From positions 178,589 through 242,588 of the IMG/VR virus record IMGVR_UViG_3300048571_000088: a stretch of DNA of 64,000 bases; one strand, 5' to 3'. The position numbers and the translations under genes are program-made. Of this stretch, positions 14,275-17,200 are shown piece after piece. The notes below the pieces were generated by a model. The model saw only the letters and a program-made list of their open reading frames with translations. It was not told the origin of the DNA and searched no databases. Positions within the stretch are counted from its first letter, which is position 1. Each line of letters begins with the position of its first letter.

Positions 14275-17200
14275 TACCTAAGTCGACTCTAAATTTTAAA
14301 TCTTCTTTAGCCTTTTTAAGGCCGTTTTCAAACGCAGTAATAATAGGATTGTTATCAGTCACATAATAATAATTATCTTTATGACCGATATCAGAAGTAC
14401 TACCTGATTCTTTTTTATACTTTTCTGCTTGAAGTAAACAAGGATGTTTTAAAGTTTTTATTAGTTTTAAATAAACTTCTTTAGAGTTTTCGTCGATAGT
14501 AACTAGTGGGTTTCCACTGTCTTCTCCGTTAACAATAGCTTCATACTCTTTAAGAGTCTCGTAGTACTCCTGAACAGAAGTTTCAGTTAAATCTTCAATA
14601 AATTTATGAACAGGTACTAAAGAAGGATGTGCAGCAGTTTGAAGTTCATCATGATAAAAAATCATTAAGAATGCTTTACAATCCTCATAAGAATTAACTA
14701 ATGGATCTCCAAGCATTCCTTTCTCTTCGAGTTCCTGACACATATTAAGAAGAGCATACTTACAAATAATTGCACCAGCAGACTGGAATAATAAATTAAT
14801 TAAACTGTGCTGAAAGCGAGAACGAAGTTTTCTTCCATCAATACCAAGAATAAATTCTTTATTACCAACTCTCTTCCAATAAGTTTCTAATTTATCTTTT
14901 AATTCTTTCAAAGCAGGAACAGATTCCCAAAATAAATCATACAACTCTTCTGCACGTTCTTTAGAAACACCTAGCATAGCTTGAAGCTTTGCAATTCCTG
15001 CACCATATAAAACAGCATAGTTAAAACTTTTTGCTGGATCTCTCTCAATACCTAGTTTCCTAGCAGTAATGCTATTACCTGTTATAAAAACTTTACCATG
15101 TCTTCTACATACTATATAAGTATCAGGAACAGATACACAGTATACAAATCCATTATATGGTACTTCAGTAATAGTTGTGTGCTTTAATGAAGATCCTTTC
15201 AAATTAAAAGGATTAAAAGGAATTAAAATTTGAAATTTATTATTTTTAGTTTGTATCAATGCTTGTCGATTAGTTGTTAAACAACCGATTTGAATAGAAG
15301 TAATAAAAGCATAGTCACTCGATGTAACAAGCAGGCCAGAATTTTTTACCATAGCAGTAAAAACAGAATTAAAATAATCAGTTTTTACTTTTTCTAAGAT
15401 ATCGTAAGCAGAAGAAAACTGATTATTTTCAAGAGATCCGTAAGCTGGAATAACTCCACTAGTCGTCAACTCTGATGCTAATACATCAATCGCAGAACTA
15501 TCTTCTGATAGTACAGCATTCCTATGCTCAGGTGTCATTAGAATAGAAAGTCTATCCCCTTGAACAGACACCATATTACCATTGTACTGACATTTAATAA
15601 ACTCAGTAGGCTTGGTAATTGATAACGCTCTAGTATCTTTATTCCATTGGACTACACTTTCGTTTTGGTTTAGATCAGAAAATAACTTAAAACCTTCTTC
15701 TGTAAGAATTTCTGTATCGTCTGAAAGACAATTTCCACTTACAAATATGTTAAGATCTTCTTTTACCATTATAAAAGAACTTGGTACTTGTACGCAACCT
15801 ACTTCCTCTTCACTTACATAAGTCGTAAGCTTTAAGGAAGAAAGAAGAACTACTTCAGAAGGTGAAATTACAATACCAAAGCTATCTTGATCTTCTACCT
15901 TATACATGTCTTCTGCAAGTAAAGTAATATAAGAATTTTCTGTAGTTAGGTCTTTAAGTAAGACTCTGTGTTTGTTTGTCATAGTCATTTTAAATCCGCT
16001 AGAATTTGAAAAGACATGCATAACATCAGATATCAAATTATTTCTACGGATAATTTTTAAAGGCTTAACAAAAGTTACTTCACCATAAGACCACTGAGCA
16101 ACAAAATCATCTACTGAAATATCAGATATTTTCTTCCAACCGAAAGGAGTTAGTAATTCATTTTTGACAGGAAAAGCATGGAGATCATTTGGTTTTTCAG
16201 CAATAAGGGCTTCTGCTAATTCGGGTCCATCTGTATAATTAAATACGTAATGACCTTCAGTCCTAGCTTCAAGGGAAGCTAAATCTAGTCCTACCTGAAC
16301 GTACCCTGCACCACACCCGAAAAGATTTCTCATACGGGCACCCTCAAGAGATGTAATTCTCGGGATGTTACAAATACCCTTATGCTTGTAGCGGAATGTC
16401 GATGCGCCGATTGTAGAAGCAGGTGTACTTATACGACCGTCTGCACGAACCATAGATTTAAAACCTTTTAAAGGCTCTCCATCTTCGTCTGTTGCAGTAC
16501 CTGAAATACTATTTCTACGGTGTTTATAAGTTAGATAGTTAGTGACATCTAAAGCAAAATCTGCTTGTTTACCAAGAAGTTTAAGGCCAGAGCATAACTT
16601 TTTCTCTGTTCCTACACGAAGAAGAGGACTAACAGGAACAATACATTTATTTGTCTTACAAGCTTTTAAAAGTTTATCTTTTAATTCTGATTCTGTTGTT
16701 TCTAGTAAAGAAAGACGGTGATCCCTAAAAGGACCGTTTAAAGTAGAATCAACGTAACGATCAACTGCTGCTAAAATCTTATCAGGGGGTTGAGCCTGTT
16801 TTTTTGAATCCTTCTTTAAGTCTCGATATTTCCATTCTTCTGGCACCCAACCTAAAGAAAGCAGATACCCTTTTAAATAGTCCAAATCATCAATAGTAGT
16901 AGGAACAGAAGTAACTAATGGCTCTCGATGAGGAAGAGAAAATACTTTATTATTATAGGTCATCGTAAGATTTTCATTATCTAAAGTAGCACCTAAACGT
17001 TCAGCAAAATTAATAAGATGAGCACCAAAAGATAAATCTTTTTTAACTTGAGAAGCAGGTGGTGTTACAGCTTTCTGCTCACCTTTATTTAAAGGACGTA
17101 AAGGAAGGCGAGGATTAACTCTTTCTGCATACTCTTTTAGTTTAGTATCAAAATGAATAAGATTATCCTCTGCTAAATCAGAATCAAAATGAAATCCAAA

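Follow-up and report, generated by a model that had tools for sequence, protein, structure and literature searches.

How can two self-splicing inteins occupy one insertion site in a DNA polymerase when no host residue separates them? The question is raised by a gene in a 64,000-nucleotide window (the whole stretch of DNA analysed, positions 178,589 to 242,588 of the IMG/VR virus record IMGVR_UViG_3300048571_000088) from a freshwater phage. Translation of window positions 14234-17800 on the minus strand gives a single 1188-aa ORF, a family-A DNA polymerase precursor whose 820-aa extein retains an intact exonuclease motif (DSEANN), motif A (LDLASLEAR), motif B (AKSFNYAVLYG) and motif C (YHDELQ). 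A 368-aa insert (15074-16177, codons 542-909) lies exactly between His541 and Ser910, between motifs A and B. Writing a slash for each boundary, the precursor reads AEKPNDLH/AFPVKNELLT...EEVGCVQVPSSFIMVKEDLNIFVSGN/CLSDDTEILT...GFVYCVSVPDTYIVCRRHGKVFITGN/SITARKLG. Intein-less relatives read AEKPNDIH/SVNARKLGI (in general KPNDIH followed by S(V/I)NA(R/K)KLG), so the insert boundaries are exact and no extein residue lies between the two elements.

The N-extein (16178-17800, minus strand, aa 1-541) ends in AEKPNDLH and is followed by the upstream intein, U (15731-16177, minus strand, aa 542-690), a 149-aa mini-intein. Its first residue is Ala542 (codon 16175-16177), followed by an invariant Pro544. 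Block B (TNKHRV) contains Thr608 and His611 with Val613, not Trp, at position B:12, and block F contains Cys669 (F:4, codon 15794-15796) in the motif VGCVQVP. The element ends in Ser688-Gly689-Asn690. At the internal junction (15728-15733, minus strand) Asn690 is directly followed by Cys691, which is at once residue 1 of the downstream intein and the +1 residue of U. This downstream intein, D (15074-15730, minus strand, aa 691-909, 219 aa), carries Thr756 and His759 in block B (T-P-E-H) with Asn761 at B:12, Cys888 at F:4, and Thr907-Gly908-Asn909 at its C-terminus. Ser910, the +1 residue of D, opens the C-extein (14234-15073, minus strand, aa 910-1188 plus the stop codon). The observation made in the first-pass annotation, two abutting inteins with the boundaries given above, holds to the residue, as do its details: Ala1 and a block-F Cys in the first intein, no block-B Trp, and neither a penultimate His nor an intact endonuclease in either element. 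U lacks an endonuclease altogether, whereas D has only an insert of ~80-90 residues (15188-15460, minus strand, about aa 781-871) at the usual endonuclease insertion point. The insert is a compact helix-strand-strand-helix-strand-strand module without a LAGLIDADG catalytic motif, conserved across the D family, and may be an endonuclease remnant.

Are these two domains or one? That a single Hint fold would count against a tandem had been set out beforehand, and structure prediction shows two. The AlphaFold2 model of the insert (mean pLDDT 89) contains two separate, complete HINT folds, of which residues 1-147 match Prp8/VMA inteins at Z about 15 and residues 148-368 match the AceL NrdHF intein (PDB 6zgq) at Z 21.8, although the last strand of U (model residues 144-148) is predicted with low confidence. 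Pfam gives only sub-threshold Hint, Intein_splicing and LAGLIDADG_3 hits, and family membership therefore rests on profiles, folds and alignments. MAFFT alignments that placed solitary U-like inteins, or in one case the polymerase sequence P0123 of our collection, on the D columns were discarded for folding in favor of a later alignment.

Both inteins are sequence and structure relatives of AceL NrdHF, which is experimentally an atypical class 3 intein with Ala1, Met instead of Trp at B:12, no penultimate His, Ser at +1 and an essential Cys124 (Hoffmann et al. 2020, PMC7891396). The U and D family profiles each hit only this intein among solved inteins (E=6.8e-12 and 9e-12, respectively). It is also the best structural match, at Z 21.8 for D and Z 21.4 for a full-length U relative, both with an rmsd of 1.6 Å over 146 residues, against about 17 for the next mini-intein. 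Cys669 aligns with the C-[VL]-x-V-P motif of Cys124. Across the U family, Pro3, the block-B His-Arg, Gly-Cys in block F and the terminal Gly-Asn are invariant, whereas residue 1 is Ala, Ser or Lys; the alignment depth for U is, however, small (6-7 sequences). The lack of Cys, Ser or Thr at residue 1, as with Ala542, is expected only for class 2 or class 3 inteins. The block-B His and the block-F Cys are invariant in both families. At position G:5, D has Thr907 and the U of the window has Ser688, with Thr found in some U relatives (FITGN). Unlike the mini-intein in the window, full-length U relatives carry a conserved two-motif LAGLIDADG endonuclease with invariant QAD and WDG (AlphaFold2 pLDDT 94.7), which matches PI-SceI, PI-PfuI and TliVMA at Z 22-26 and I-DmoI at Z 13.8.

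The zero-spacer tandem occurs in at least ten other metagenomic polymerases, among them those we label P0002, P0005, P0006, P0122, P0123/L002/L005, P0124, P0133 and P0268. U was never solitary in an exhaustive HMMER scan of 1.84 billion representatives or in our other scans, while D-type inteins are common alone at the same site. Megablast of the polymerase gene against 50,697 GenBank phages found nothing, and tblastn of the insert against the same set found only distant single inteins and no tandem, the best being that of the Acinetobacter phage ME3 polymerase at 31%. In the intein tree U and D fall in different clades split by a 100/99 branch, each has closer relatives elsewhere, and the D inteins are interspersed with solitary ones. 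U pairs with three different resident lineages, its presence needs at least 3-4 changes on the N-extein tree, and polymerase pairs 78-80% identical differ only by U. We looked for horizontal transfer of U in the identities. For P0002 and P0005, U is more alike than the extein over full length including the endonuclease (64% against 53%), but on HINT-only columns U and D are equally divergent (63 and 61), and we do not claim a direction (gain or loss).

The interpretation in the first-pass annotation is therefore only partly supported. Its reading of two head-to-tail inteins at one site, with Cys1 of the second serving as +1 nucleophile of the first, and of a first intein that is class-3-like despite lacking the block-B Trp, is supported. 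Its suggestion of a duplication is not, since the clade structure points to a second, different intein lineage joining an already occupied site. Its inference that splicing must be ordered or cooperative is not required by the chemistry. Excision of U first would leave D in its ancestral DLH/Cys context, and excision of D first would leave U with Ser910 at +1, the context of the nearest relatives of U and of AceL NrdHF; both orders would give NDLH-SITARK. Its alternative that the pair excises as a unit is unlikely, because Asn690, Cys691 and the block-B His and block-F Cys of U are invariant in all U sequences aligned or inspected.

We consider it likely, with some reservation, that the precursor carries two separate inteins of different lineages, probably both active. 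What the analysis establishes is the abutting arrangement at one conserved site, the residency of D (Cys1-bearing D-type inteins occupy the site alone in many related polymerases and track the polymerase phylogeny), the restriction of U to a lineage seen only next to another intein, and the loss of its N-terminal nucleophile with retention of the block-B His, block-F Cys and terminal Asn. The activity of either intein and the class of mechanism are inferred from conservation and homology, and homing too is only inferred. In this view, U splices like AceL NrdHF: Cys669 attacks the His541-Ala542 bond to form a branched thioester, the N-extein passes to the thiol of Cys691, Asn690 cyclizes and releases U, and D then splices in its ordinary DLH/Cys...Asn/Ser context, the reverse order being chemically just as possible. 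Having lost the endonuclease that its full-length relatives keep, the U of the window would therefore be a stranded, vertically inherited copy. The classical class 3 triad is incomplete in U, which has no Trp at B:12 and Ser rather than Thr at G:5, although about 6% of class 3 inteins deviate at B:12. All non-U relatives keep both Cys1 and the block-F Cys, so that the latter is not by itself proof of a class 3 route.

Of the alternatives, a class 2 (KlbA-like) route for U is the least improbable, though we regard it as unlikely. Here the thiol of Cys691 would attack the His541-Ala542 bond directly and Cys669 would play a structural or redox role. Every U has Cys at +1, including each with a non-nucleophilic residue 1, and the closest relatives with Thr or Ser at +1 (P0011 and P0126) keep Cys1. 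The block-F Cys is also present in all Cys1-bearing relatives, so it need not be the primary nucleophile. On the other hand, Cys669 is invariant in U and shares its motif with Cys124, the proven branch point in an intein with Ala1 and Ser at +1, and KlbA is only a weak structural match (Z 13.8 against 21.8). Still less likely is a composite element that leaves as one U-D polypeptide, with the N-terminal reaction done by U, the C-terminal reaction by D and the internal junction never cleaved. The absence of U without a downstream intein, the comparable divergence of U and D between lineages and the low-confidence junction strand would be compatible with it. However, the two active sites lie in separate HINT folds, transfer of the N-extein from U to Ser910 across two domains has no precedent, the terminal Asn of U and Cys1 of D are invariant, D-type inteins are inferred to function alone in close relatives, and U has three different kinds of partner.

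It is also improbable that U is a dead relic, kept as a 149-aa insertion in the mature polymerase or residing in a pseudogene. Ala1 removes the canonical nucleophile, and the penultimate His, the endonuclease and above-threshold Pfam scores are missing, yet a proven active intein has the same apparent defects (PMC7891396). Catalytic positions are invariant across U sequences only 38-64% identical, and the arrangement has persisted through about 50% extein divergence. The site lies between motif A and the O-helix of the fingers domain, all polymerase motifs are intact, and population variants are mostly synonymous (16 of 20), including TGT>TGC at Cys691. A metagenomic assembly chimera of two alleles, conceivable because both intein types exist alone at this site in related phages, is very improbable. 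A Logan contig from another run, listed under a different sample and study, spans 15519-16379 with 0 differences and so covers both junctions of U; other runs bridge single junctions, and the architecture recurs in at least ten independently assembled, divergent sequences from several sources. The phage is present in freshwater samples from at least 24 runs. Public runs aligned to the window also gave one joint, 15024->16184, skipping 1159 nt. As its shorter side is only 20 letters, its middle is unknown and its length is not a multiple of 3, it probably comes from a related polymerase, and we do not use it as evidence of an intein-free allele.

AceL NrdHF shares with U a phage-like metagenomic origin, Ala1, the block-F Cys motif, the absence of B:12 Trp, penultimate His and F:13 His, and a length of about 146-149 aa. 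It is, however, naturally split, sits alone in an RNR beta subunit and has Ser at +1, whereas U is contiguous, sits in a DNA polymerase and has the first residue of another intein at +1; D additionally keeps Cys1. Canonical class 3 inteins with the Trp-Cys-Thr triad (MP-Be DnaB, Msm/Mch DnaB-1) resemble U in lacking an N-terminal nucleophile and in the F:4 Cys, a hydroxyl residue at G:5, phage association and the HINT fold, but differ in the B:12 residue and the penultimate residue (Gly, not His) and are a weaker structural match (Z about 16). The class 2 intein Mja KlbA likewise combines Ala1 with Cys at +1, but its route involves no block-F nucleophile. Several inteins in one replication gene, which can interact in homing, are known from haloarchaeal MCM-a/-d (PMC10643990) and Msm DnaB i1/i2 (PMC6195587), but these occupy separate sites with extein sequence between them. 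Twintrons, introns inserted into introns, also use one selfish splicing element as the insertion context of another, and removal of both restores the host product; here the elements are proteins, juxtaposed rather than nested, and the order of removal is not obviously fixed. Our literature searches for tandem, nested or adjacent inteins found no natural zero-spacer case, although their coverage was incomplete and absence is not proven.

The distribution of U raises the possibility, which we hold tentatively and rate at slightly less than even, that its lineage is a hyperparasitic intein specialized to invade alleles whose site is already filled by a resident, endonuclease-less intein. Its LAGLIDADG endonuclease would recognize the composite junction of N-extein (AAR CCN AAT GAT YTN CAY) and resident intein (TGY YTN ... 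ACN GAA ATT CTT ACN). U would insert exactly there, borrow Cys1 of the resident as its own +1 nucleophile, and no longer need a residue-1 nucleophile of its own. In favor of this, U pairs with three resident lineages and comes and goes among polymerases about 80% identical, and its sister lineage (P0011, P0126) does the mirror image, sitting two extein residues downstream of a resident intein.

Inteins are normally described as bounded by host residues on both sides, and an occupied site is taken to be immune to further homing, whereas here a splice junction of one intein is another intein. Fast, junction-tolerant mini-inteins of this branch, and orthogonal tandem pairs, are of practical interest for protein ligation. 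The locus provides a natural test bed for how two auto-processing domains sharing one scissile bond and one thiol (Asn690-Cys691) avoid interfering with each other, and for whether splicing order is kinetically programmed. It extends the poorly sampled AceL-NrdHF-like branch of class 3 inteins (no Trp, no penultimate His) to a large phage polymerase family, whose members keeping both Cys1 and the block-F Cys bear on how class 3 chemistry evolved. It also bears on whether homing endonucleases can retarget to extein/intein junctions, which would be a new ecological niche for selfish elements, that of a parasite on a parasite.

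The insert lies within a single minus-strand ORF (window 14234-17800, 1188 aa) that Pfam identifies as a family-A DNA polymerase, with hundreds of metagenomic relatives (786 with E<=1e-3). The window is part of a 242,588-bp IMG/VR viral contig, and the neighbouring genes are phage-like: an SbcCD-like nuclease, a ribonucleotide reductase (RNR), RIIA and an HNH endonuclease. Intein-less polymerase relatives of about 763 aa read ...AEKPNDIH directly followed by S(V/I)NA(R/K)KLGI..., whereas the window polymerase has 368 aa between ...AEKPNDLH and SITARKLGI.... These residues correspond exactly to codons 542-909 (window 15074-16177, minus strand) and divide between ...NIFVSGN and CLSDDTEILT... 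into two elements, an upstream intein U (aa 542-690, 149 aa), which starts with Ala1, and a downstream intein D (aa 691-909, 219 aa), which starts with Cys1. The observation made in the first-pass annotation, two inteins joined head to tail at one site, is confirmed, and all of its sequence details are correct; its interpretation is only partly supported by our data.

The junctions are reproduced by contigs from other public freshwater runs, one of which covers window 15519-16379 without a difference. Of 20 population variants in the gene, 16 are synonymous, including TGT>TGC at Cys691. One Logan contig, from run X3, joins position 15024 to 16184 and thus skips the whole tandem plus 55 nt. As its shorter side is only 20 letters, its middle is unknown and the length is not a multiple of 3, it probably comes from a related polymerase rather than from an intein-free allele of this phage.

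An AlphaFold2 model of the 368-aa insert, calculated from a 23-row alignment, has a mean pLDDT of 89 and a pTM of 0.62 and contains two separate complete HINT domains rather than a single fold. Residues 1-147 align with Prp8/VMA inteins at Z about 15. Residues 148-368 align with the AceL NrdHF intein (PDB 6zgq) at Z 21.8 and an rmsd of 1.6 Å over 146 residues, clearly above the next hit at 17.7. The low pTM and a low-confidence stretch at residues 144-148 indicate only that the relative position of the two predicted domains is undetermined. D also carries an insert of about 80-90 aa at the usual endonuclease position, with a helix-strand-strand-helix-strand-strand layout, which is conserved in the D family but has no LAGLIDADG catalytic motif.

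Profiles of the U and D families each hit one solved intein by sequence, AceL NrdHF, at E=6.8e-12 and 9e-12, respectively. This intein was shown experimentally to use the class 3 route (PMC7891396). It has Ala1, Met-Cys-Thr instead of Trp-Cys-Thr, neither of the two His residues that usually assist Asn cyclisation, Ser at +1 and an essential Cys124. Cys124 lies in ...H-C-L-S-V-P..., which is the motif of U (VGCVQVP) and of D (VYCVSVP). The missing block-B Trp and penultimate His pointed out in the first-pass annotation are therefore hallmarks of a known, active, atypical class 3 branch and not signs of decay. In the U family, Pro3, the block-B His-Arg, the block-F Gly-Cys and the terminal Gly-Asn are invariant among sequences that are 38-64% identical. 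D keeps Cys1 as well as the block-F Cys, as do all non-U relatives; these inteins may use a class 1, a class 3 or a relay mechanism.

A third intein in the window combines Cys1 with class 3 features. It is located in the RNR large subunit (window 27601-28008, minus strand, inside ORF 26461-28305), between SNL and C-x-E at the catalytic site, and comprises 136 aa starting with Cys1 (CVAPETLILT). It has a complete Trp-Cys-Thr triad, with Trp at B:12 in TPEHKW, Cys at F:4 in TYCLTEP and Thr at G:5, together with a penultimate Gly, a terminal Gln instead of Asn, and Cys at +1. The RNR large subunit itself is encoded on the minus strand as two ORFs (window 26461-29119). ORF 28388-29119 has the N-terminal domain and barrel positions 2-82, and ORF 26461-28305 has barrel positions 118-522. 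They are separated by an 82-nt gap, and about 35 profile positions are unaccounted for, which could reflect a frameshift, an intron or a fractured gene. A free-standing HNH/homing endonuclease ORF of 500 aa (window 22052-23554, minus strand; phrog_559, E=8e-54) lies about 4 kb from the polymerase and is another sign that this genome is rich in selfish elements.

The zero-spacer tandem is recurrent. Among related metagenomic polymerases (P numbers) and the related contigs examined (L numbers), it occurs in P0002, P0005, P0006, P0122, P0133 and P0268, in the P0123/L002/L005 lineage and in P0124. P0125/L004 begins with the same Ala1 U but is cut by the contig end before the junction. Residue 1 of U is Ala in most sequences, Ser in P0122 and Lys in P0124, and the residue after the terminal Asn of U is always Cys1 of another intein. 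In P0124, the downstream partner is a different, third type of mini-intein (CYSEDTEILT...VSGN). No U-lineage intein standing alone was found in an exhaustive HMMER scan of 1.84 billion representatives, in scans of IMG/VR and of JGI metagenomes, or in a word-indexed search of 5.8 billion proteins. By contrast, D-type inteins with Cys1 are common alone at this site, for example in P0003, P0004, P0007, P0008, P0009 and P0015, and a third type with Cys1 and an endonuclease is also common alone there.

A second site two residues upstream, between KPND and CH, with Cys replacing the usual Ile/Leu, holds D-like inteins. In P0011 (aa 565-1107) and P0126 (aa 21-571), such an intein is followed by only the extein dipeptide Cys-His and then, immediately after NDxH, by a U-lineage intein with Cys1 and an endonuclease. 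Some relatives (L005, JACCDZ010720371.1; P0268; also P0070) carry yet another intein about 20 residues downstream in polymerase motif B, where it begins with Cys after ...FSYA and ends in GN before C(M/L)YG.... L005 and P0268 therefore have three inteins within about 25 extein residues. Other interruptions were seen in this gene family. In the viral contigs L002 (1036-5011) and L003 (885-4413), the polymerase is broken into two or three ORFs near ...FRYKH and ..ICN(I/V)PR..., with about 230-370 nt between the first two ORFs; this may be an intron or a fractured gene, and the L005 relative is continuous there. In L011 (5001-10125), the contig of P0004, the closest D-only polymerase ORF stops 94 aa into the C-extein and is followed by a 421-aa DUF723 ORF and a 259-aa ORF with a faint LAGLIDADG_3 hit, which suggests a free-standing endonuclease gene splitting the polymerase.

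In a tree of 45 inteins built from the HINT parts only (134 columns), the eight U inteins and the two downstream inteins of P0011 and P0126 form one clade (100/99), separate from all others. D inteins are interspersed with solitary ones: D of P0006 pairs with P0004, D of P0005 with P0008 and D of P0122 with P0026, all with starred support, while D of P0124 falls in the third-type clade. The tandem is therefore not a duplication, one of the two origins proposed in the first-pass annotation, and U has partnered at least three resident lineages. On the N-extein tree, one clade of eight polymerases (99/99) holds all five full-length tandems and three D-only genes. The presence of U needs four changes, of which at least three are forced by well-supported branches. 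The pairs P0005/P0008, P0006/P0004 and P0122/P0026 are about 78-80% identical in the exteins (about 71-80% in D) and differ by U. As this count is unrooted and identity comparisons are ambiguous, the pattern may reflect repeated gain or repeated precise loss.

Full-length U relatives, their sister lineage and the third-type inteins share one endonuclease domain, with invariant Q-A-D and W-D-G, the acidic residues of the two LAGLIDADG motifs, plus several invariant Lys/Arg residues. The AlphaFold2 model of U from P0002 (pLDDT 94.7) matches the endonuclease-bearing inteins TliVMA, PI-PfuI and PI-SceI at Z 22-26 over about 300 residues. Its residues 113-281 match I-DmoI at Z 13.8, and its HINT part again matches AceL NrdHF at Z 21.4. 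The DNA on either side of the U insertion point, the N-extein end GAAAARCCNAATGATYTNCAY and the D start TGYYTN...ACNGAAATTCTTAC, is fairly conserved between tandem and D-only alleles. A junction-specific target is therefore plausible but unproven. The U of the window has itself lost the endonuclease.

While the exact boundaries, the recurrence and the separate lineages of U and D are direct results of the sequence comparisons, splicing and its mechanism are inferred. If U reacts first, Cys669 would attack the His541-Ala542 bond, the acyl group would move to the thiol of Cys691, Asn690 would cyclise, and an S-to-N shift would give NDLH-Cys691, leaving D in the context in which solitary D inteins work. 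If D reacts first, an N-to-S shift at Asn690-Cys691 would be followed by acyl transfer to Ser910 and cyclisation of Asn909, leaving U with Ser at +1, the context of its sister lineage and of AceL NrdHF. Both routes would end in NDLH-SITARK. In contrast to the suggestion that splicing must be ordered or cooperative, order is therefore not chemically forced, although it may be set kinetically by which intein tolerates its non-native neighbour (Ser-Gly-Asn at -3 to -1 for D, Cys-Leu-Ser at +1 to +3 for U). Alternatives are a direct class-2 attack by Cys691, excision of the pair as one unit, and an inactive U. Unit excision and inactivity fit poorly with the invariant internal junction and the invariant catalytic residues of U.

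By fold (predicted), junction residues and homology, both elements are inteins. U fits the atypical AceL-NrdHF-like class 3 pattern but fails the classical Trp criterion, and D is a Cys1-bearing relative. Known multi-intein genes such as haloarchaeal MCM and mycobacterial DnaB have extein sequence between their inteins (PMC10643990, PMC6195587). Our literature searches found no natural case with none, although the library searched was limited and a precedent cannot be excluded. The window polymerase differs from these genes in the absence of any extein residue between its two inteins. Our data also leave room for a more far-reaching view, in which U would belong to an intein lineage specialised to live beside, and home into, other inteins.
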